Positions 1,729 to 15,406 of a stretch of 64,000 bases of DNA are shown here, piece by piece (position 1 is the first letter of the stretch; each line of letters begins with the position of its first letter). The translations under genes were made by a program, and so were the position numbers. The stretch is from assembly GCF_000143415.4 (NCBI RefSeq), contig NW_003314326.1, positions 620,001 to 684,000 of the forward strand, read 5' to 3'. The notes below the pieces were generated by a model. The model was not told the origin of the DNA. It was given only the letters and a program-made list of their open reading frames with translations, and did not search any database. The DNA comes from Selaginella moellendorffii. Its lineage: Eukaryota; Plantae; Lycopodiophyta.

Positions 1729-4453
1729 TCAAACTTGGAGAAGTTTGCGAGCTTCACTCTCGACGTTGTCTACCGTGAAGCCAAATTTCTTGAACACGTC
1801 CAGGTAAGCTCCACTCTTTCCAAACGAGTTCACCGCAAGAACCCGGCCATGGAATCCAACGTACTCTCTCCATCCAACCGGCGAGCCAGCCTCCACGCTC
1901 AATCTCTTCTTCACGCTCCTCGGAAGAATCTCGTCCTTGTACTCGACCGGCTGCTCGTCGAACAGCTCCCAGCTAACCAGCGACACCACTCGTACCTTAA
2001 ATCCATCGCTTCGCAGCTTCTCGGCCGCTCCCTCGCACAGGCATAGCTCGGAGCCTGTTCCGATGATAATGAGCTCGGGATCGCTGCCGCTGGAGGAATT
2101 GTCGCTGACGACGTAGCCTCCCTTCTCAACTTTGTCAGCCGAAGTTCCTGCTACGTGAGCCTGGACTTTCTGCCTGGAGAGTGCGATCACGGTCGGGCCT
2201 GAATCTCGTCTTCTCACTGCCACTTGGTATGCTCCGCTGGTTTCGTTGCCATCAGCCGGGCGTAGAACGACCAAGTTTGGGATCGCTCGAAGTCCCACGA
2301 GCTGTTCTACTGGCTGGTGCGTCGGACCATCTTCACCCAGGCCGATGGAGTCGTGCGTGCAAATGTAGATCACGCCGGCTCGGCTGAGAGCTGAGAGCCT
2401 CATGGCGTGTTTCATGTAGTCGCTGAAGGCTAGGAACGTTGCCGCGAACGGGATGAGACCGCTAGAGTGGAGAGACAGGCCGTTGGAGATCGCTGCCATT
2501 GCGTGCTCACGAATTCCATAGCGGACGTTTCTTCCCCACGGAGTCTTGTGTTGGAAATCATCGTAGTCTTTGAGATAGGCCTTGTTTGATGATGCTAAGT
2601 CTGCACTGCCGCCAATCAGTCCAGGAATCACAGTAGATAATGCGTTGAGACATTTCTCCGAGTAGCTTCGGGTGGCGTCCACAGGATCTGATTGAGACCA
2701 TGTCTATAAAACAAACAAAAACGTGAGACAAAAAATAAAACTACTAAGTGAAGAGAAACACAAAAAACTTACCGGTAAGACTTTTTCCCATCCCTCGGAA
2801 ATGATATTTCCAAGAAGCTGTTTGAACTCGTTGGCCTCGTTAGGAAATTCCTGCTCGTACTTGGCAAGCTCTATGTTCCACTCCTCTTCTATGCATTCTG
2901 CTTCCTTGGCCTTTTTCTTGAACTCCCTGGAACGAAGCTTAGTCAAGACGGAATGAAGATACTCGACTTACTCGTAAACCGTGGGTACGACATAGAAAGG
3001 CTCTCTTCCCTCCCAACTAAGAGCCGCTTTGATGCCTTTCACGTCTTCTTCGTCAAAAGTTCCGTGATGTGCTTTAGAAGTTCCTTGTTTCTTAGAAGGA
3101 AAACCGATTGAAGACTTTACCTGAACAAATGCGGCTTAGCAAACGAAAGCAATAAGCATTCTCACGATACTCTACCTGGATTAATGTTGGTTTCTCAGTT
3201 TCCGCGAAAGCTTCGTCTAGAGCTTTAACAAACTTTCCAGGATGCTCGTGGATATCTTCCACAAGAATCGTTTGCCATCCTAGAGCCCTGTATCTGCCAG
3301 CCACATCCTCCGAGAACGCAAGCTCTGTATCACCATCAATCGTATTATGATTGTCATCGTAAATGACTGTGAGCTTGTCGAGTTTCCAGTGCCCGGCTAA
3401 TGAAGCTGATTCGTTTGAAATGCCCTCCATAGCACATCCATCTCCCATAATGCAAAACCTGTAAAAATGATGTTTGTGATAAGATCCACGAGTTGTTGCC
3501 TTACGTTCTGTGGTTAACAATATCATGTCCCGGTTTATTGAATCGAGCTGCTAGATGACGTTCCGCTAACGCTAGTCCCACAGCATTTGCTACTCCTTGT
3601 CCAAGAGGACCTATAAACCAAAGAAGAAGAAGCAAGAAATCAATAGCATCAAACCAGACTGAAAAAAATCATACCAGTTGTTACTTCGATACCAGCAGTC
3701 TCAGAATTTTCTGGGTGGCCTGGAGTACGTGCTCCAAACTTACACAAGCGTTTCAAGTCCTCCATCTAAGAAGAAACAATCGCAGGCTAAGAACAAACAA
3801 GAAAGAAAGAAAGAAAAACCTCAAACCTGGACAGATTCAAAGCCTGCTAGATGAAGACATATGTACTGAAGAAGGCAGCCATGGCCAGCGCTAAGAACGA
3901 AGCGATCGCGATTAAACCATCCAGGATTTCCCGGATTGTATTTCATCACCTTCCTGTAGAGCGTGAATCCAACCTCGGCCATTCCCAGCGGCATTCCTGG
4001 ATGCCCAGCCTTGGCATTGTTGACGGCATCCACCACAAGCATGCGCATATTTTGGACGCATCGTCGATCGATCTGTTCCTGGAGCCATTCCTTGTCGCGA
4101 GCGCGTCCATTAGCCTTGTATTCATCCCACACCCTTGATCCAAGCATCATCCTCAGCTCATCCTCCCACACCTCCACAGACCCTAGCTCCGATTCTTCCC
4201 GGAATTCCTCCCTCGCTGTGTCCACGGATCTATCGTGCGTCTGCCCCGGCTCGAGATCGAGCGCCGTGGATTTCCGGATGGACTCCTTGACCTGATCCCT
4301 CTGCTGGGACGAGGCGCGAACCTGGAGATGGAGAAACCTGTGCCTGTGAGCTCCCGCCGGCGATCGAGCGAGAAGAAAGCGCCCGGCCCTGGCATTGTAA
4401 ATCGAGGACGAAATCGAGAGAGAGCCCGTCGATGATGCTGTGAGGGACGCCAT
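1729..4453 (-). CDS. Plastid transketolase; multi-exon
   Basis: Ser/Ala/Arg-rich transit-peptide-like start [11 protein letters not shown] at ATG 4453. Motifs [20 protein letters not shown], the ThDP motif GDGCAMEG...N, GIREHAM and [20 protein letters not shown]. Confidence 0.95.
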
Positions 4454-4689
4454 TGCTGCTCTCTCGAGCATGAAAGACCTTCCATTTGAAATATAGGGCT
4501 TTAACAACAAACGTGGCAAGAGCCAACAAGGCCAAGTGGCAGCCGCGCGTCCAAAGTACATATTCACTGGTTATGACTACCATAACTATGTTTACTTTAA
4601 ATATGTTTAAAAATATTTAAGTTGTTTAATTTTTAAAAAATAAAAATAAAAAATTTTAAATAATTCTTTGTTAATCCCAAAACTAATAA

Positions 4690-4765
4690 GTATTATGATT
4701 ATGATTATTAGTATTATTATTATTAAAAGTCCAGAAGAAAGAATCAGATAGTAAGCATATTATTA

Positions 4766-4802
<37 letters not shown>

Positions 4803-4810
4803 CATTATTA
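4690..4810. repeat. Imperfect (TAT)n microsatellite
   Basis: Runs of tattattat immediately downstream of BURP copy 1; a shorter version sits at about 9308-9322 in the duplicate. Confidence 0.8.
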
Positions 4811-4826
4811 GCTTTTTTAGATACAA

Positions 4827-6877
4827 TCAAGCATAGACAGTGGCAGTGGGAACGAACATAATGACCGTTTCCACAAACCAGTGACAAACATAAGTCTTAC
4901 CCATCTTGTGGCACAGAACGTTTGGAGTGAGCTCCATGCCACTGCTGGTCTTCACATTTACTTTGGAAGCGCTGGTGCTACTCACCTTGTGACAGAAGTA
5001 GACTTTGTATGGAAACATAGTTGTGTGGCAGACGACCATAAGGGTGTCGCCTTTCGTGATGGGCTTGACCTCGCCAAGCTTGATAGTTTTTCCAACCTCG
5101 GCCGCGAAAGCCTTGCTTCCTGTCACCATGGTAATCTCTACAGGGCCAAGGGTGGAGGTGACGAACTCGGCCATTTCTTCCATGGAAGCCACACACTTCA
5201 TCTTCCCCCCAGCATTGTCATTGCAGAGTTCCAGAGTGAAGGCCATCTTTCTTGCCAGTGGAGACTCCTTTGGGACGTTAAACTCTTTCAAGTAAGAGTC
5301 AAGGCTCCGCTTACCGAAGTTTGTGTGCTTAGCCATTGCGTTTGGCAGGAGTGCCCGTGGAGGATAAGTGTCACGGATGTTTGGGAGGACACTTTCAGTT
5401 CCTGTCAAGATTTTCCACAAGTACGAGTAAATAAGTTTGCAAAAGGAATGTTTGGACTTACCGTTTCTCTGTCGGAGTTCTTCCAGTGTGAAGAAGTGAT
5501 GGAGCATTCCAGGGGAGCATTTCGCTATTAAGGCTTTGATGGTTGGCCAGTCCATAGAGTGCAGTGACTTCCTTCCTCCATAACCCTCTTCCTCGTACTC
5601 AGTAAAAATCTGGATCAAATACAGCGGCATGTTCTTCTTGCAACTAGTGCTTGGTTTGACAGAAGCATCGCCAAAGTGAGCATTTCCTCCTAATCCGTGG
5701 TCACCAAAGTGAGCATTTCCACCTAGAGAAGCATCACCAAAGTGAGCATTTACGCCTAAACCATGGTCTTTGAAGTCCCCAAAGTGAGCATTGCCACCCA
5801 AACTTTGGTCTTTGAAGTCACCAAAGTGAGCATTACCACCCAAACCATGATCTTTGAAATCGCCGAAGTGCGCGTTGCCACCCAAACCATGGTCTTTGAA
5901 GTCCCCAAAATGAGCATTGCCACCCAAACTTTGGTCTTTGAAGTCACCAAAGTGAGCATTACCACCCAAACCATGATCTTTGAAGTCACCAAAGTGAGCA
6001 TTACCACCCAAACCATGATCTTTGAAATCGCCGAAGTGCGCGTTGCCACCCAAACCATGGTCTTTGAAGTCCCCAAAATGAGCATTGCCACCCAAACTTT
6101 GGTCTTTGAAGTCACCAAAGTGAGCATTACCACCCAAACCATGATCTTTGAAATCGCCGAAGTGCGCGTTGCCACCCAAACCATGGTCTTTGAAATCGCC
6201 AAAATGGGCGTTGCCACCCAATGACCCATGGTCTTTGAAATCGCCAAAGTGGGCATTGCCACCCAAGTCATGGTCTTTGAAGTCGCCGAAGTGTGCATCT
6301 CCACCCAATGATCCGTGGTCTTTGAAGTCACCAAAGTGCGTATTTCCACCCAATCCAGTGTCACCAAAGTGAGCATTTCCGCCAAGCCCGTGATCCTTAC
6401 GAAAGTCACCAAAGTGAGCGTTTCCACCCAGAGCTCCATGATCTTTGAAGTCACCAAAGTGTGCATTGCCGCCAAGATCTCTGGCTTCCAGCGAGCGTAC
6501 ACGGTCATGGAAGTCACCAAAGTGAGCATTCCCTCCGAGCTTGCTTGCTGCAAGGGCGGTCTTCTCTGCAGCATCGCCAAAGTGGGCATTGCCTCCATGC
6601 CTTCCGTAAGGATGACAAAAAAGTCCTGCACGGTGGCAAAGCTTTGCATCGGCCGTGAAAACGCCTCTTCTCATCTGCTCGCCGAAGCGAGCCGATTCGA
6701 ATGCCCCCAGAGGCGAGGCTTCATCGGCGAAACTCGTGGAGATTATGTCACTGCATTCGGAAAGCTGCCAAACAGGAATCCCCAGCTTTAATAACGATTG
6801 AACGATATAAGTTGGAAAGAACTACTTACAAGGAGAGACGAGAAGAGAAGAGATAGGCCGAGCGCAAGGCGATCCAT
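4827..6877 (-). CDS. Secreted BURP-domain protein with 22 (L)GGNAHFGD repeats, copy 1; PG1beta-like, candidate fused burpitide precursor/cyclase
   Basis: Exon 1 6877-6830 encodes MDRLALGLSLLFSSLL. A GTAAGT..AG intron (6829-6765) joins exon 2 at 6764 (LSECSD...), in frame with ORF 4827-6674. A 60-nt in-frame intron lies at 5461-5402. The BURP domain starts at FF (about 5495) and has CH-x10-CH-x25-CH-x7-CHW. Confidence 0.92.
5667..6596 (-). repeat. Coding tandem repeat, 22 units, mostly 42 bp (LGGNAHFGDFKDHG)
   Basis: 22 GGNAHFGD-type units counted in the translation (variants GGNTHFGD, GGDAHFGD, GVNAHFGD). Spacers are FKDHG, FKDQS, TG, AS or HG. Confidence 0.95.
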
Positions 6878-7124
6878 GGTCTTGCGATGGGGCTGGAAGC
6901 CAGAATTTATTGATCGTAGTCTCACTGTGCAAGTAAAGAGACAGATATCTTTCAAGCCTCCGTGGCTTTAACTCTTTTGTCCGGGAGCGTGAATTATAGA
7001 GGAAGAATTCAATTTAGAATTGCATGTTGAAACTTTTGCTAAAACTCTTTATAATTGCATTGATTAATTGATCGATTTTGGAGATAAGGACCCGCACCAA
7101 CTTTCGGGCCGGACGAATTCTCGC

Positions 7125-8240
7125 AGAATTTTCAAGATAATTATTTAATCTAATTAATTTGTATTAAGGTTGGGACTACTTCTTCTTCCGCAATTGATCC
7201 ATTACCAGCACTGGCTGATATTGCCAAGGTAAAAATACATTTTCTAGTTATTGAATGTTTTATTAATTTCCAAGAGACGGGAATGTGGGATGTGGTTCCA
7301 TGTTGATGCAGCTTATGCTGGTAATGCCTGCATTTGTCCAGAATTTCGACATTTTTTAAATGGTGTTGAAAATGCCCACTCTTTTAATCTAAGTGCAAAT
7401 AAGTGGCTTCTTACCAATATTGACTGTTCCATACTTTGGCTGAAGGTTTGATCTTTTACAAACGTTACAATCAATTTTTAATATACTCTTACAGGACTCT
7501 AAGCAGCTATCTTCGACACTTTCAACATTAACAAACATACAGGTATGAGTTCTTAAATCTACTCTTTTTCATAGTTCAATTCAGTCTCGGGTGGTAAATT
7601 TCAAAGATGGCAAGTTGCTCAAGGAAGACGATTTAGGTAAGTGCGAATAATTCTTTTTCCTTTGACATGGGATACTCTTTTCCAATCTTTAAAGCTGTGG
7701 TTTGTGATGCGCTTGTATGGAGCCTCGGGACTTCGTAGCCACATAAGAACTCACATAAACCATGCTAAGCATTTCGAGATCCTTGTGCCAGAGGACTCTC
7801 GCTTTGAGGTATAACTCGTGAGAGTTCTCTAAAATTGTGAGACCATGATCTACGTTTGTGAGTTGCCAGTCTTAGCACCATGTCGATTTGGTCTCGTTTG
7901 CTTCAGGCTCAAACCAAGTGTAAAACAGTAAGGGCCAACAGCGTCGAGCGCCGTCAGGTGGTCGAAGATTGGAATAGACACTCGGAGAGATCTCTGTGAA
8001 GATAACGGATGGAAACTGAACTGTTTGCTTCTGGAAACTGTTAACTCTGGGGGAAAGATTTTCATGACACACACTGTAAGAAGCTCTCAAGCTATAGTGA
8101 AATGGGACTATAACCGATTTATCCTCAGGTACTCTCGGGCGTGTATACATTGAATGTCAATTGGTGGCACGCAGACTAAACGTGAAAATGTTGATGGTGC
8201 GTGGAAGATAATCCGCACAAAACTTGTTAGATCAAGATTA
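7125..8240 (+). pseudogene. 5'-truncated duplicate of the AADC-like gene
   Basis: Near-identical to about 12585-13680 but lacks the 5' exons. Broken acceptors (gacgg for gacag; ttccaa for ttcag), a frameshift in KDWQ (aaagatgg), and a 69-bp insertion at 7928-7996. Confidence 0.9.
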
Positions 8241-8335
8241 ATAAGACCAGGTTATAATATCAAGATAATATCCTTGTGCATTTAAGAATAATAATTAACT
8301 AAGAAAACCTAGCTTTTAAAATGGTGAAAATCCAC

Positions 8336-9187
8336 GTGTGAGAAAGGGGCGAGTCTCGGAAGAGTTCTAGATGTGGTGACTAGGTATGTTTTTCTCTTTT
8401 CCTTTGTATCCGTTCCAGGTACTAGGGTCGCCAGGCAGCAGCATTGCCCGAGCAAGAGGGCTGTAGAAAGATCGGGGATCAAGCAGCCAAAGAAAAACTA
8501 TAACCAGGCTATATTTCTCAAGATTGTCTCCCAGGATCGCCAGGAGCTTTTCAGGAAGCAATGCGGAGAGCCCATCATCAAGAAATCCATTGAGAAGAGG
8601 GAATTTTTGCTAGGAAACCATTTGAACTGGAGAACACACATAACTGTGGTTTTTGCTGGCGCGGTTTTGCTTGCAACACCTGCGTTTGCGGCCGATGCTC
8701 TCAAGACATGTTCCTGTCTTCTCAAAGAATGCTGGTAATTTTATTCTTCTCTTTTGTCCTTCAAGAAAGATGAGTTTTTTTTTTCTTCCCTAGATTGGAG
8801 CCTGCTTGATGTATTGCAGATCCTTCGTGTGGTGCCAATGTTGCGTGCTTGCAAACTTGTAATGATTGACCTAACAAGACTGAGTGCCAAGTAAGTCTCT
8901 AGATTTTGTGTAAAACTTCTTTTGGATTGATCGACCATTGTGATTCACAAATACTTTCAGATAAAATGCAGAAACATTTTCGAAAACAAGGTGGTGGATA
9001 ATTGAGTGGTGAAAATGCAGAGACATTTTCAAGAACAAGGTGGTGGACGAATTCAACGATTGTGCAGTGAGCTGCAAGAGCTGCATCCCGCAGAAGAAAG
9101 ACGAGTGGCATTTCCGAGTCCCGCCACCCTCGGCACTTGTCCAGAGCTTCAACACCACGAAGTTTACTGGGAAATGGTTCATCTCCA
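8336..9187 (+). pseudogene. Truncated duplicate of violaxanthin de-epoxidase
   Basis: [14 protein letters not shown] and later exons resemble 13800-14647, with frameshifts and an internal duplication. Ends abruptly after GKWFIS at the duplication junction. Confidence 0.9.
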
Positions 9188-9326
9188 AATGTGTTTAAAA
9201 TAATGAAGTTGTTTAATATTTAAAATATTTATTTACAACTTATCAAGACGTTAAAAAAAAAGTAATATAATTTCAAATATTTTTTGTTGTTAACCCCAAA
9301 GCCAATAAGTATTATTATTATTACAA

Positions 9327-11379
9327 TCAAGCATAAACAGTGGCAATGGGAACGAACATAATGACCGTTTCCACAAACCAGTGACAAACATAAGTCTTGC
9401 CCATCTTGTGGCACAGCACATTTGGAGTGAGCTCCATCCCACTGCTGGTCTTCACATTTACTTTGGAAGCGCTGGTGCTACTCACCTTGTGACAGAAGTA
9501 GACTTTGTATGGAAACATAGTTGTGTGGCAGACGACCATAAGAGTGTCGCCTTTCGTGATGGGCTTGACCTCGCCAAGCTTGATAGTTTTTCCAACCTCG
9601 GCCGCGAAAGCCTTGCTTCCTGTCACCATGGTAATCTCTACAGGGCCAAGGGTGGAGGTGACGAACTCGGCCATTTCTTCCATGGAAGCCACACACTTCA
9701 TCTTCCCCCCAGCATTGTCATTGCAGAGTTCCAGAGTGAAAGCCATTTTTCTTGCCAGTGGAGACTCCTTTGGGACGTTAAACTCTTTCAAGTAAGAGTC
9801 AAGGCTCCGCTTACCGAAGTTTGTGTGCTTAGCCATTGCACTTGGCAGGAGTGCCCGTGGAGGATAAGTGTCACGGATGTTTGGGAGGACACTTTCAGTT
9901 CCTGTCAAGATTTTCCACAAGTACGAGTAAATAAGTTTGCAAAAGGAATGTTTGGACTTACCGTTTCTCTGTCGGAGTTCTTCCAGTGTGAAGAAGTGAT
10001 GGAGCATTCCAGGGGAGCATTTCGCTATTAAGGCTTTGATGGTTGGCCAGTCCATAGAGTGCAGTGACTTCCTTCCTCCATAACCCTCTTCCTCGTACTC
10101 AGTAAAAATCTGGATCAAATACAGCGGCATGTTCTTCTTGCAACTAGTGCTTGGTTTGACAGAAGCATCGCCAAAGTGAGCATTTCCACCTAGTGAAGCA
10201 TCACCAAAGTGAGTGTTTCCACCTAAACCATGGTCTTTGAAGTCCCCAAAGTGAGCATTGCCACCTAAACCTTTGAAGTCTCTGAAATGAGCATTGTCAT
10301 GGTCCTTAAAGTCGCCAAAGTGAGCATTGCCACCCAAACTTTTGTCTTTGAAGTCACCAAAGTGGGCGTTACCACCCAAGCCATGGTCTTTAAAGTCGCC
10401 AAAGTGTGCATTTCCACCCAAACTTTGGTCTTTGAAGTCACCAAAGTGAGCATTACCACCCAAACCATGATCTTTGAAGTCGCCAAAGTGGGTATTACCA
10501 CCTAATGATCCATGGTCTTTAAAGTCTCTGAAATGTGCATTACCGCCACCCAAACCGTGGTCTTTGAAGTCGCCAAAGTGGGCGTTACCACCCAAGCCAT
10601 GGTCTTTCAAGTCGCCAAAGTGTGCATTTCCTCCTAAACCATGATCTTTGAAGTCACCAAAGTGAGCATTACCACCCAAACCATGATCTTTGAAGTCGCC
10701 AAAGTGGGCATTACCACCCAATGATCCATGGTCTTTGAAATCACCAAAGTGGGCATTGCCACCCAATCCATGGTCTAATTTAAAGTCGCCAAAGTGTGCA
10801 TTTCCACCCAATGATCCGTGGTCTTTGAAGTCACCAAAGTGCGCATTTCCACCCAATCCAGTGTCACCAAAGTGAGCATTTCCGCCAAGCCCGTGATCCT
10901 TATGAAAGTCACCAAAGTGAGCGTTTCCACCCAGAGCTCCATGATCTTTGAAGTCACCAAATTGTGCATTGCCGCCAAGATCTCTGGCTTCCAGCGAGCG
11001 TACACGGTCTTGGAAGTCACCAAAGTGAGCATTCCCTCCGAGCTTGCTTGCTGCAAGGGCGGTCTTCTCTGCAGCATCGCCAAAGTGGGCATTGCCTCCA
11101 TGCCTTCCATAAGGATGACAAAAAAATCCTGCACGGTGGCAAAGCTTTGCATCGGCCGTGAAAACGCCTCTTCTCATCTGCTCGCCGAAGCGAGCCGATT
11201 CGAATGCCCCCAGAGGCGAGGCTTCATTAGCGAAACTCGTGGAGATTATGTCACTGCATTCGGAAAGCTGCCAAACAGGAATCCAAGTTTTAATAAGGTT
11301 TGAACGACAGAAGTTGGAAAGAACTACTTACAAGGAGAGACGAGAAGAGAAGAGATAGGCCGAGCGCAAGTCGATCCAT
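9327..11379 (-). CDS. Secreted BURP-domain protein with 22 (L)GGNAHFGD repeats, copy 2; PG1beta-like, candidate fused burpitide precursor/cyclase
   Basis: Exon 1 11379-11332 (signal peptide), intron 11331-11268, exon 2 from 11267, and a 60-nt intron at 9961-9902. The BURP domain is almost identical to copy 1, with all four CH motifs. Confidence 0.92.
10167..11099 (-). repeat. Coding tandem repeat, 22 units (LGGNAHFGD plus spacer)
   Basis: 22 units counted; variants NAQFGD, NTHFGD and NAHFRD. Confidence 0.95.
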
Positions 11380-11616
11380 GGTCTTGCGATGGGGCTGGAA
11401 GCTAGAATTTATTGATCGTAGCCTCACTGTGCAAGAAAAGAGACATAGATTTTTCAAGCCTCCGTGGGGACAATTGCTTTAATGCTCTTTTGTCCGGGAT
11501 CGTGAATTATTGATCTTGGCTTTGTACATTTCTCGATTTGCAGATAAGGACCCGGCACCGACTATCGTGCTGGACGATCTCAACTAATCATGTCAGAACC
11601 CTAAACACCGACGTTG

Positions 11617-13676
11617 ATGGATCCACAAGAGTTTCGAGCTCAAGCGCACAAGATGGTCGATTTCATCGCGGACTACTATCGGGATGTGGAGAGCCTTCCT
11701 GTGCGCAGCCAAGTTACAGTGAGTATATGATAAAGATCCATTGCCACATTCCAGGTTTGTTTCTTGTAGCCGGGATACTTGCGGAGTTCTCTTCCATCCA
11801 ATGCACCCGAGGAGCCTCAAAGCTTTGACACTGTTCTGGACGGTTTGCCTCGAGATTATCCATCCTATGATCCAAGAGTAGAAACAGCATTGTCGATTCG
11901 ATTGTTTGGCACACAGATGTGAAGTCAATGATAGTCCCTGGCGTCACGCATTGGCAGAATCCAAACTTTTTTGGTTTCTTCCCATCCAACAGTAGCACGG
12001 CGGGGATGCTGGGTGAGTTTCTCAGCGGCGGATTCAACGTAGATGGAAGCGAGTGGGCGACTTCTCCTGCGGCAACCGAGCTGGAAATGCTCGTCCTAAA
12101 CTGGCTGGGGAAGCTTCTTAATCTTCCAGACGAGTTTCTCTTCAATCGAAGCGGTAAACTCTTCATATTAATCAGCAGTAGATTAACTTGAAGTTTAAAT
12201 AGGCAATGGTGGTGGAGTGATCCATGCTAGTGCTAGTGAGGCTGTTCTAGTAGCCTTGCTAGCCGCTCGAGGTCGAGCTATTTCAGAGAACAAAGCCAAA
12301 GGTCTGGAAGAACAAGAAATTCTCTCCAAACTTTTGGTCTATACATCGGATCAAACACATCCTTGTCTACACAAGGCATGCGTGGTAGATAAACTATACA
12401 TATTTGAATAGTATAATTTCTTATGAAATTGTTATTGCAGATTGTTGGGCTCCCCAAAAGCAACCTTGTGATTCTGCCGACACTTGCGACAGATGATTGT
12501 GCTCTTTCACTTTCTATATTAAAATCAGCTGTTCAAGACAGTCTTGCGAAAGGCTTCATACCATTTTTCCTTGGAGCAACAGTGCGTAAGAATTTTCAAG
12601 ATAATTATTTAATCTAACTAATTTGTATTAAGGTTGGGACTACTTCTTCTTCCGCAATTGATCCATTACCAGCACTGGCTGATATTGCCAAGGTAAAAAT
12701 ATATTTTCTAGTTATTGAATGTCTTATTAATTTCCAAGAGACAGGAATATGGGATGTGGTTCCATGTTGATGCAGCTTATGCTGGTAATGCCTGCATTTG
12801 TCCAGAATTTCGACATTTTTTAAATGGTGTTGAAAATGCCCACTCTTTTAATTTAAGTGCAAATAAATGGCTTCTTACCAATATTGACTGTTCCATACTT
12901 TGGCTGAAGGTTTGATCTTTTACAAACGGTACGATCAATTTTTAATATACTCTTACAGGACTCGAAGCAGCTATCTTCAACACTTTCAACATTAACAAAC
13001 AAACAGGTATGAGTTTTTAAATCTACTCTTTTTCATTCATACAATTTCATTTCAGCTAAAAACTAGTTCAATTCAGTCTCGGGTGGTAAATTTCAAAGAT
13101 TGGCAAGTTGCTCAAGGAAGACGATTTAGGCAAGTGCGAATAATTCTTTTTCCTTTGACATGGGATACTCTTTTCAGATCTTTAAAGCTGTGGTTTGTGA
13201 TGCGCTTGTATGGAGCCTCGGGACTTCGTAGCCACATAAGAACTCACATAAACCATGCTAAGCATTTCGAGGTCCTTGTGCGAGAGGACTCTCGCTTTGA
13301 GGTATAACTCGTGAGAGTTCTCTAAAATTGTGAGACCATGATCTACGTTTGTGAGTTGCCAGATCTTAGCACCATGTCGATTTGGTCTCGTTTGCTTCAG
13401 GCTCAAACCAAGAGTAAAACATGAAGATAACGGATGGAAACTGAACTGTTTGCTTCTGGAAGCTGTTAACTCTGGGGGAAAGATTTTCATGACACACACT
13501 GTAAGAAGCTCTCAAGCTATAGTGAAATGGGACTATAACCGATTTATCCTCAGGTACTCTCGGGCGTGTATACATTGAGGATGTCAATTGGTGGCACGCA
13601 GACTAAACGTGAAAATGTTGATGGTGCGTGGAAGATAATCCAGGAGGAAGCACAAAACTTGTTAGATCAAGATTAA
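11617..13676 (+). CDS. PLP-dependent group II aromatic L-amino acid decarboxylase-like protein (TDC/TyDC/AAS family), divergent active site; multi-exon
   Basis: Motifs [57 protein letters not shown], the PLP-lysine motif SANKW and [16 protein letters not shown]; stop TAA at 13674-13676. The exons I traced join in frame; one uses a GC-AG intron (13130-13177). Confidence 0.88.
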
Positions 13677-13900
13677 TAAGACCAGGTTATAAAATATCAT
13701 TGTGCATTTAAGAATAATAATTAAATAAGAAAAACCCTAGCTTTTAAAACGGTGAAAATCCTGGCCGTTGGCCAGTGAAATAAGCGGCGGATCCATGGGC
13801 TACGTGGGAGAAAGGGGCGAGTTATCCATGGAGTTTCGGAAGAGTTCTAGATGTGGTGACCAGGTATCTTTCTCTCTTTGCCCTTTTATCCGTTTTGGCG

Positions 13901-15406
13901 ATGAACGCAAGGGCATTTTGCGCTCCTCCAGGTACTAGACTCGCCAGGCAGCAGCATTGCTCGAGCAAGAGGGCTGTAGAAAGATTGGGGATCAAGAAAA
14001 ACTATAACCAGGTTATACTTCTCAAGATCGTCTCCCAGGATCGCCAGGAGCTTTTCGGGAAGCAATGCGGAGAGCCCATCATCAAGAAATCCATCGAGAA
14101 GAGGGAATTTTTGCTAGGAAACCATTTGAACTGGAGAACACACATAGCTGTGGTTTTTGCTGGCGCGATTTTGCTCGCAACTCCCGCGTTTGCGGCCGAT
14201 GCTCTCAAGACGTGCTCCTGTCTTCTGAAAGAATGCCGGTAATTTTATTCTTCTCTTTTGTCCTTCTAGAAAGACGAGTTTTTTTTTTTTTTTTCCCCTA
14301 GATTGGAGCTCGCTCGATGCATTGCAGATCCTTCGTGCGCTGCCAACGTTGCATGCTTGCAAACTTGTAACGATCGACCTGACGAGACCGAGTGCCAGGT
14401 AAGTCTCTAGATTTTGTGTAAAACTTCTTTTGGATTGATCGATCGTTGCGATTCACGAATACTTTCAGATAAAATGCGGAGACGTCTTTGAGAACAAGGT
14501 GGTGGACGAATTCAACGATTGCGCGGTGAGCCGCAAGAGCTGCGTCCCGCAGAAGAAAGACGAGGGGCGTTTCCCAATCCCACCACCCTCGGCACTCGTC
14601 CAGAGCTTCGACACCACGAAGTTCACTGGGAAATGGTTCATCTCCAGCGGCCTCAACAGGTCCTTCGATACTTTCGATTGTCAGCTCCACGAATTCACCG
14701 CCGCTCCACAGAGATTGACAGGGAACTTGAGCTGGAGAGTGAACACTCCCGACGGGGGATTCATCACTCGAAAAGCAGTCCAGAGCTTCCAACAGGACGC
14801 CGAGAATCCAGGAGTTCTCTACAACCATGGCAACGAGTTTCTACACTACAGGGACGATTGGTAAGTCTCATTCAATCGATCAAAACTTAGTTTTTCTTTG
14901 GCGATCTCCATAGGTACATTCTTTCGTCCAAGCTGGAGAATCGAGGAGACGACTATGTTTTCGTGTACTACCGAGGATCAAACGATGCATGGGACGGATA
15001 TGGTGGCGCCGTCGTCTACACTCGCAGTAGAACACTGCCGCGCAGCATAGTGCCCGAGCTCCAGCGCGCGGCAGCCAAAGTGGGCCTGGATTTCGCAAAG
15101 TTCTCGAGCACGGACAATTCGTGCGGGCCGGAGCCGCCGCTGCTGGCGCGGATCGAGAAGAAAGTGGAGGAGGGCGAGAGCGTCCTGGCCGAGGAGGTGC
15201 GGGACATCGGCAGGGCCGAGAAATCGCTGCTGGACAAGATCGAGAGCGGGATCGAGAGCGGGATCAAGGAGCTGGAGAAGGACGAGGTGAGTTTCCTCAA
15301 GGGATTGAGCGAGGAGGAGAAGGCGCTGCTGGAAACGCTCAAGATGGAGGCCAAGGACGTGGAGAAGCTTTTCGGGGGCGCGGTCCCGGTGAGGAAACTC
15401 CGCTAG
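13901..15406 (+). CDS. VDE: Violaxanthin de-epoxidase (start codon uncertain)
   Basis: Cys-rich domain [15 protein letters not shown], lipocalin domain [19 protein letters not shown]...[42 protein letters not shown], and a Glu-rich tail ending PVRKLR. Confidence 0.93.

Follow-up and report, generated by a model that had tools for sequence, protein, structure and literature searches.

What might a BURP domain do with a repeat array that offers it neither Tyr nor Trp? The question is raised by two neighbouring genes, here called A and B, on the minus strand of a 64,000-nucleotide window of the Selaginella moellendorffii genome (contig NW_003314326.1, positions 620,001 to 684,000). Each gene encodes a protein in which a predicted signal peptide and a short segment are followed by 22 units rich in His, Phe and Gly, and then by a C-terminal BURP domain. 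A first-pass annotation, made from the sequence of this window, had presented the pair as a candidate new burpitide system, that is, as precursors of RiPPs (peptides made on ribosomes and modified after translation). We tentatively favour a different reading, in which these are proteins of the type of the beta subunit of tomato polygalacturonase isoenzyme 1 (PG1-beta), the BURP domain may modify Phe residues in its own repeats, and the repeat polypeptide would itself be the product; we regard this as a strong possibility that falls somewhat short of probable. The gene pair looks like an odd PG1-beta relative, and like a lead for new BURP chemistry rather than a demonstrated RiPP class.

The open reading frame (ORF) listing of the window contained minus-strand ORFs of 615 codons (4827-6674) and 616 codons (9327-11177), each forming the greater part of a three-exon gene. 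Exon 1 of each gene is 48 nt long, encodes MDRLALGLSLLFSSLL, and is joined in frame to exon 2 through a GT..AG intron of 65 nt in gene A and 64 nt in gene B. The second intron is in frame and stop-free in both genes, so that the ORF runs through it, and the unspliced reading gives 20 false residues. The spliced translation of gene A is letter for letter that of XP_024514723.1, and that of gene B is letter for letter that of XP_024514722.1; both reading frames and all splice sites are intact. The earlier description of two intact genes, each with a signal peptide on a small upstream exon, a pro-segment, 22 units and a BURP domain, is thus matched by the RefSeq models, although the in-frame 60-nt intron within the BURP region had escaped it. 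The fused-precursor architecture that it proposed also stands, but not the novelty: both genes are in RefSeq, labelled "polygalacturonase non-catalytic subunit AroGP3(-like)", and XP_024514723.1 has been named SmPG6 and placed with PG1-beta-like proteins (PMC9121072). The genes are therefore already known and named, and what is new here is the 14-residue period of the repeats, their alignment to the FxxY repeat of PG1-beta, and an 18-residue deletion in the BURP domain.

Both proteins contain exactly 22 repeat units. The sequence GGNAHFGD is exact in 19 of the 22 units of protein A and in 17 of the 22 of protein B, and in nearly all units AHFGD is preceded by Asn and ends in Asp. The modal period is 14 residues (12 of the 21 intervals in A and 8 of the 21 in B), corresponding to a DNA period of 42 nt, around which the spacers vary in length, as had been noted at first pass. 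The arrays (310 and 311 residues) are composed of Gly, Asp, Phe, His, Ala, Leu, Asn and Lys, with a few Ser, Arg, Thr, Gln, Glu and Val, and they are free of Tyr, Trp, Cys, Met, Pro and Ile. None of the 44 units has a Tyr or Trp, in agreement with the earlier statement that His and Phe are the only aromatic residues of the repeats. His makes up 12% of the array, Asp 13.5% and Gly 25%, and the calculated net charge is about +13 at pH 5.5 and reverses to about -13 at pH 7.

When the units were compared with each other, the GGNAHFGD core had a proportion of synonymous differences (pS) of 0.64-0.71 and a proportion of nonsynonymous differences (pN) of 0.015-0.044, values that fit the earlier remark that LGGNAHFGD is near-invariant while its codons vary. 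The adjoining FKDHGL gave a pS of 0.29-0.56 and a pN of 0.065-0.090 (pN/pS ~0.16-0.22). Since pS between units is high and pN is low, the units are old copies held to one peptide sequence and not recent duplicates; by this comparison of sequences, strong purifying selection keeps the repeat peptide fixed. The pattern noted at first pass goes far beyond what chance would give. Two familiar repeat types, the RTX-type GGxGxD calcium repeat and the pentapeptide repeat, were considered and rejected, because the observed period of 14 agrees with neither 9 nor 5 and the unit does not match their consensus positions. Searches for the repeat motif or for close BURP relatives in 5.8 billion protein clusters, limited by their length windows, returned only S. 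moellendorffii proteins and one unrelated pentapeptide-repeat protein. The repeat is likely to be absent from other spikemosses, and no mention of the motif was found in the searchable literature.

The rhythm of the arrays is that of PG1-beta. In the PG1-beta family, the central domain consists of ~21 fourteen-residue repeats beginning with FxxY (PMC5313189, PMC4460304), and the AtPGLs likewise have 21 FxxY repeats of 14 residues each (PMC4460304, PMC5313189). The spikemoss arrays have the expected number and length of tandem repeats, but the FxxY at the repeat start is missing, its positional counterpart being FKDH. For this alignment, 133 FxxY units taken from 14 proteins were combined into a profile of 14 columns, against which the spikemoss unit was tried in all 14 circular registers. 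The best register placed FKDHGLGGNAHFGD against F-x-x-Y-G-x-x-x-N-x-x-x-x-x with a score of 8.4 (column permutation z 2.3, p 0.022), matching Phe 1, Gly 5 and Asn 9, and hhalign, a profile-profile method, independently arrived at this register with three-unit windows, aligning 44 columns without a gap (P 0.0012, probability 19%). As far as these alignments indicate, the counterpart of FxxY most likely lies in FKDHG, His standing in for Tyr, and with it would come the counterpart of the Phe that is dehydro-Phe in angiosperm PG1-beta; the Asn of GGN is most likely the conserved Asn of the PG1-beta unit, with AHFGD on positions that are variable in PG1-beta. The division of the repeat into an LGGNAHFGD core and an FKDHG spacer, proposed at first pass, is therefore doubtful, since the unit is a 14-mer in which two methods put FKDH at FxxY.

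The resemblance extends over the whole precursor. PG1-beta-like proteins (the tomato beta subunit/AroGP1-3, AtPGL1-3 and OsBURP16) share with the spikemoss proteins a signal peptide, an ASPL ... C-x6-C segment, ~21-22 repeats of 14 residues and, at the C-terminus, a BURP domain. A published motif analysis assigned to SmPG4 and SmPG6 the repeat-domain MEME motif 2 and the BURP motif 14, as in the Arabidopsis and rice PG1-beta-like proteins, together with a motif 19 of their own, and found motif 3 absent (PMC9121072). Unlike the loosely similar units of PG1-beta, the spikemoss units are near-identical, and GGNAHFGD is invariant where PG1-beta varies. The N-terminal segment aligns with a conserved BURP-family segment, in which S33, P34, L35, C59 and C66 are invariant in the alignment; it is shortened, without the PF..KA.L.R.W part of PG1-beta-like proteins, and His follows both Cys residues (CHRAGLFCH in gene A, 6612-6638; CHRAGFFCH in gene B, 11115-11141; both minus strand). 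Among the 60 best-scoring HMMER matches tabulated, this N-terminal CH-X5-CH pair occurs in this family only. It is reminiscent of the stapled bis-His copper sites in the BURP domain.

The BURP domain itself was confirmed by a hidden Markov model search, in which both proteins matched PF03181 with an E value of 3e-29 (102 bits against a cut-off of 27) over profile positions 23-179 of 216. The FF motif, an extra Cys pair, S-x-E-x-M and all four Cys-His (CH) pairs are kept. The first-pass annotation had correctly listed the four pairs, but the spacing of the third to the fourth is 7 and not 25-26: all five members of the family described below have CH-X10-CH-X25-CH-X7-CH, and not the canonical CH-X10-CH-X25-27-CH-X25-26-CH (Hattori 1998, as quoted in PMC8672867 and PMC11253845). 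A clean 18-residue deletion lies directly after the third CH, and the lost segment, D-T-S ... W ... H. A F .. L, is conserved in most relatives, PG1-beta-like proteins among them. In this family, Phe takes the place of the usual C-terminal Trp. Among the 60 best-scoring matches tabulated, the gap between CH3 and CH4 is below 20 in two (10 and 15) and 21-24 in four more; these short gaps include those of a moss protein (15) and a clubmoss protein (21).

An AlphaFold2 (AF2) model of part of protein B (P0002:352-642), made with 110 sequences in the alignment, had a predicted local distance difference test (pLDDT) score above 90 over the domain, from about residue 80. Its only structural match in Foldseek was the crystal structure of the copper-dependent peanut cyclase AhyBURP (8SY2/8SY3; E 1.3e-9), and in VIA-align to 8SY2, model residues 88-291, to the C-terminus, gave a Z of 12.5 with a root-mean-square deviation of 2.2 A over 141 residues; the next unrelated match had a Z of 3.5. 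The proteins thus combine the BURP fold with the modular precursor layout of signal peptide, short segment, repeats and C-terminal BURP domain with FF motif. BURP enzymes use bis-His copper sites, which are disulfide-stapled in AhyBURP (PMC12164859). By sequence and by predicted strand pairing, the four CH-pair His residues and the Cys staples for two such sites are present here, and the domain may bind copper. In the model, CH3 and CH4 lie on adjacent strands of a hairpin with a two-residue turn, cross-strand like CH1 and CH2, and the disulfide-stapled bis-His geometry could survive the deletion, as judged from secondary structure and not from distances. The last repeats in the model (pLDDT 31-45) were not docked in the BURP cleft, and the repeat array modelled alone reached a pLDDT of 40 with no usable fold. 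A look-alike search of the ESM Atlas with the repeat region gave no usable match. A complex prediction for the BURP domain of gene B (P0002:436-642) with three units (286-330) scored 0.00, which counts neither way on binding.

The best-scoring sequence matches of the domain are also of PG1-beta type, in line with the polygalacturonase-like labels of RefSeq and PMC9121072. When 1.84 billion representatives were scanned in full by HMMER with the BURP domain as query, a gap without scores separated the family itself from matches at E 3e-19. The three best matches outside the family (P0003, P0004 and P0005) are PG-type proteins or their sisters, in a clade holding FxxY-repeat proteins, and P0004, with 620 residues, has a long 14-residue FxxY array (16 in-register steps counted). 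In a maximum-likelihood tree of BURP domains, the gene pair was on a long branch in a polytomy, inside the half (Shimodaira-Hasegawa-like approximate likelihood ratio test 98) that holds 9 of the 10 FxxY-repeat proteins as well as short unlabelled proteins, a moss and a clubmoss sequence among them, and outside the other half.

Genes A and B are young duplicates of each other, with a pS of ~0.05 and two amino-acid differences in the 258 C-terminal residues. Three further paralogues, with 17-20 units each, are located on another scaffold of the same genome, so that the family has at least five members, and the same design is kept in all five. In the reading that we favour, A and B are recently duplicated members of an S. 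moellendorffii-restricted family of at least five PG1-beta-type BURP proteins. The paralogues on the second scaffold (P0173, P0174 and P0175) have some longer intervals between units, of 23-57 residues, with one or two Tyr, unlike genes A and B.

Expression was evaluated with contigs from four public runs (X1, X2, X3 and X7), each from a different study, mapped to 9200-10150 in the region of gene B. From the contigs of all four runs precisely the 60-nt intron 2 is missing (plus strand CT..AC, gene strand GT..AG), and contig depth within the intron is zero in all four. Such exact skipping, with no depth inside the intron, indicates that the contigs derive from RNA and that the family is transcribed and spliced as annotated; the first-pass annotation had allowed for a lack of expression, which these four studies do not bear out for the family. 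Some contig letters match gene A, some gene B and some neither; among the last are 9501 G>A, which recurs in all four runs, and letters at 9522 and 9606. This mixture, which is to be expected of near-identical paralogues, makes it impossible to assign transcripts to copy A or copy B. Several near-identical copies or alleles are expressed, and the letters that match neither gene suggest further expressed paralogues or the other haplotype. A very short 3' untranslated region is suggested by three of the four runs, whose coverage stops at ~9296-9322.

What the domain may do can be proposed by combining two sets of published results. The mature PG1-beta wall protein consists of the repeat domain, and each FxxY Phe that has been identified in it carries a shift of -2 Da, read as alpha,beta-dehydro-Phe (Sergeant et al. 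2017, PMC5313189); the change is restricted to Phe within FxxY (PMC5313189). Binding of pectin/PG2 by this wall protein is a further mark of the PG1-beta-like subfamily. Fused BURP domains depend on copper and O2; they take hydrogen from unactivated carbons of peptides within their own chain, and the resulting radical is coupled to Tyr or Trp (PMC11253845, PMC12164859). We propose that the spikemoss repeat would be the counterpart of the FxxY 14-mer, with Tyr changed to His (FKDH) and a new GGNAHFGD block in the variable positions, and that the protein would enter the secretory pathway, where the BURP domain would bind copper and act in cis on its own repeats, taking a C-beta hydrogen from Phe. 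Since neither Tyr nor Trp is at hand as a partner, the likeliest outcome would be desaturation of Phe to dehydro-Phe (-2.016 Da per site), as at the FxxY of angiosperm PG1-beta, and a link to the neighbouring His would be a less likely alternative. In both systems Phe is first in a 14-residue repeat of a BURP-domain precursor, and a -2 Da shift would follow. The product would be a modified apoplastic (wall) polypeptide rich in His, Asp and Phe, and its change of charge between pH 5.5 and 7 would suit pH-dependent binding of pectin or metal ions. Because the repeat domain of PG1-beta is itself a mature wall protein with dehydro-Phe, a modified polypeptide seems at least as likely as excised small peptides. 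BURP chemistry independent of Tyr and Trp, carried out 22 times in its own chain, either as a Tyr-independent Phe desaturation or as a new His-Phe crosslink, would be the most novel outcome, and one that we hold to be unlikely.

Several observations weigh against this proposal. The next-best register, FGDFKDHGLGGNAH (score 3.1), has FGDF in the place of FxxY, and MAFFT favours the other register at the first unit, with FGD(F/A) against FGSY; the register that we prefer has modest support behind it (p 0.02; hhalign probability 19%). In each protein, GGNAHFGD persists in three or four units from which FKD is missing, so that the most constrained block is not the counterpart of FxxY. In PG1-beta the modification is confined to FxxY, whereas position 4 is His in the spikemoss unit; Tyr may be required for modification of Phe, yet it is absent here. 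No published work was found that links the BURP domain of PG1-beta to dehydro-Phe. The deletion in the BURP domain takes out a Trp present in 80% of relatives and a His present in 77%, and it could alter or abolish activity. In the tree the gene pair is on a long branch (0.95) in a polytomy, and published classifications of these genes disagree, one of them putting all lycophyte BURPs in a separate lower-plant subfamily (PMC6102523) and the other placing SmPG6 with PG1-beta-like proteins (PMC9121072). Modification of the repeats is a proposal.

Two other functions have to be weighed against a PG1-beta-type protein that modifies its own repeats. In the burpitide proposal of the first-pass annotation, (L)GGNAHFGD or AHFGD would be cores that the fused BURP domain crosslinks by new chemistry, for example from the His imidazole N to the Phe C-beta, before Asn/Asp-specific proteases release cyclic peptides. 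As is typical of a multi-core RiPP precursor, the 22 units are near-invariant while their synonymous divergence is saturated, Asn and Asp are at the right places around AHFGD, and His is already a crosslink partner in moroidin, where Trp-C2 is joined to His-N1 (PMC11253845). The spikemoss proteins also resemble the fused burpitide precursors (AhyBURP for lyciumin I/legumenin, SkrBURP of Selaginella kraussiana for selanines, and the moroidin precursors) in having repeated short peptides N-terminal to a BURP domain in one polypeptide, with secretion predicted here, as well as in the fold of AhyBURP and in four CH pairs that could form two disulfide-stapled bis-His copper sites. However, every characterised burpitide uses Tyr or Trp as its crosslink partner (PMC11253845, PMC12164859), and the units have neither; membership of the class fails on this point, and any BURP chemistry on these Tyr- and Trp-free repeats would differ from that of every described burpitide. 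The spikemoss proteins differ further from these precursors in their far greater number of units, strict 14-residue rhythm and CH3-CH4 spacing of 7 against 25-26, and in the weak sequence similarity of the BURP domain to AhyBURP (E 0.005). The 14-residue period, the unit number and the register instead match PG1-beta, whose repeat domain stays a protein, and the so-called spacer is also under selection. No such peptide or motif was found in the searchable literature, and we consider release of small cyclic peptides unlikely. The masses given for the linear peptides, 545.223 for AHFGD and 886.393 for LGGNAHFGD, were correct on recalculation.

If the repeats were left unmodified, the proteins would be His/Asp-rich wall proteins, either metal-binding (Cu, Zn) or pH-switched pectin-binding polyampholytes, in which the BURP domain serves as a pro-domain, targeting module or copper carrier. 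The composition of the array, the change of sign of its calculated charge between pH 5.5 and 7, and a repeat region predicted to be without a stable fold are all consistent with this, and the BURP deletion could mean that catalysis has been lost. The sequence DHGLGG, a His followed by a Gly-rich stretch, recalls the copper-binding octarepeat of the prion protein and may serve as a lead only. A USP-type BURP protein is reported, in work cited in PMC9121072, to raise Cd/Cu tolerance. On the other side, the CH pairs, Cys staples and S-x-E-x-M are kept under strong selection (pN 0.003 and pS 0.053 between the BURP parts of A and B), and metal or pectin binding by composition alone would have no need for eight invariant residues with Phe among them; we judge an unmodified protein somewhat unlikely. 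That the genes are decaying or non-functional lineage-specific duplicates might be suggested by the lack of a repeat homologue outside S. moellendorffii in the 5.8 billion clusters, by the BURP deletion and by the truncated decarboxylase gene beside gene A (see below). This is already contradicted by the intact models, by RNA contigs that show transcription and splicing, and by pN/pS far below 1 in repeats and BURP domain, with the design kept in five paralogues, and it appears very improbable.

PG1-beta-like proteins are the BURP subfamily with the least understood biochemistry, and the spikemoss family is a natural variant of their design, in which Tyr is removed, His and a second Phe are fixed, and the copper-site scaffold persists in trimmed form. 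Modified repeats would show that a BURP domain is capable of acting without a phenolic or indole partner; if they are unmodified, Tyr is probably required for the modification of PG1-beta. Chemistry free of Tyr and Trp, if true, would mark the BURP domain as the long-sought dehydro-Phe enzyme of PG1-beta-type wall proteins, or would define a new burpitide class. Trypsin cuts once per unit, after Lys, and one tryptic peptide per unit, DHGLGGNAHFGDFK, would report any modification; its calculated mass when unmodified is 1470.664 Da ([M+2H]2+ 736.339), and that of a second tryptic peptide, DQSLGGNAHFGDFK, is 1491.674 Da.

Features of the two BURP genes in the analysed window (window coordinates)
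Feature	Position	Strand	Description	Basis
Gene A (SmPG6 / XP_024514723.1)	4827-6877	minus	641 aa; exons 6877-6830, 6764-5462, 5401-4827 (stop included)	
Gene A exon 1	6830-6877	minus	signal-peptide exon, 16 codons	
Gene A intron 1	6765-6829	minus	GT..AG, 65 nt	
Gene A N-terminal segment	6597-6764	minus	conserved BURP-family segment (ASPL ... C-x6-C)	alignment
Gene A repeat array	5667-6596	minus	22 units, 310 aa, modal unit FKDHGLGGNAHFGD, without Tyr/Trp	
Gene A intron 2	5402-5461	minus	60 nt, in frame, GT..AG, within BURP region	
Gene A BURP domain	4830-5495	minus	FF motif to C-terminus, split by intron 2	Pfam PF03181, CH spacing
Gene B (XP_024514722.1)	9327-11379	minus	642 aa; exons 11379-11332, 11267-9962, 9901-9327	
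Gene B introns	11268-11331 and 9902-9961	minus	64 nt and 60 nt	
Gene B repeat array	10167-11099	minus	22 units, 311 aa	
Gene B BURP domain	9330-9995	minus	split by intron 2	Pfam, AF2 model
Tandem duplication with BURP gene	copy 1 4822-6997; copy 2 9322-11510		92.6% identity over 2206 nt	blastn of window against itself

A gene for a pyridoxal-dependent decarboxylase is arranged head to head with the BURP gene and was duplicated together with it, 7125-9187 matching 12589-14646 in pieces on the plus strand. The copy beside gene B (11617-14646, plus strand) matches its Pfam profile from position 27. Beside gene A, the counterpart of ~1.08 kb (11510-12589) is gone and the 5' third is missing, the first Pfam-matching piece starting at profile position 225 of 375, and this copy is probably a pseudogene fragment. 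Since an intact decarboxylase adjoins only one of the two BURP genes, an obligate BURP-decarboxylase cluster becomes less credible, and the decarboxylase as a necessary cluster partner was rejected as unsupported. Directly after the stop codon of gene A there is a (TAT)n microsatellite of ~18 copies (4758-4810); gene B has none at the corresponding position, a stretch (9200-9320) over which the two copies are strongly diverged. An exon at 3824-4567 (minus strand), close downstream of gene A, encodes an N-terminal extension, possibly a transit peptide, and after it the beginning of a transketolase (Transketolase_N, E 1.6e-31).

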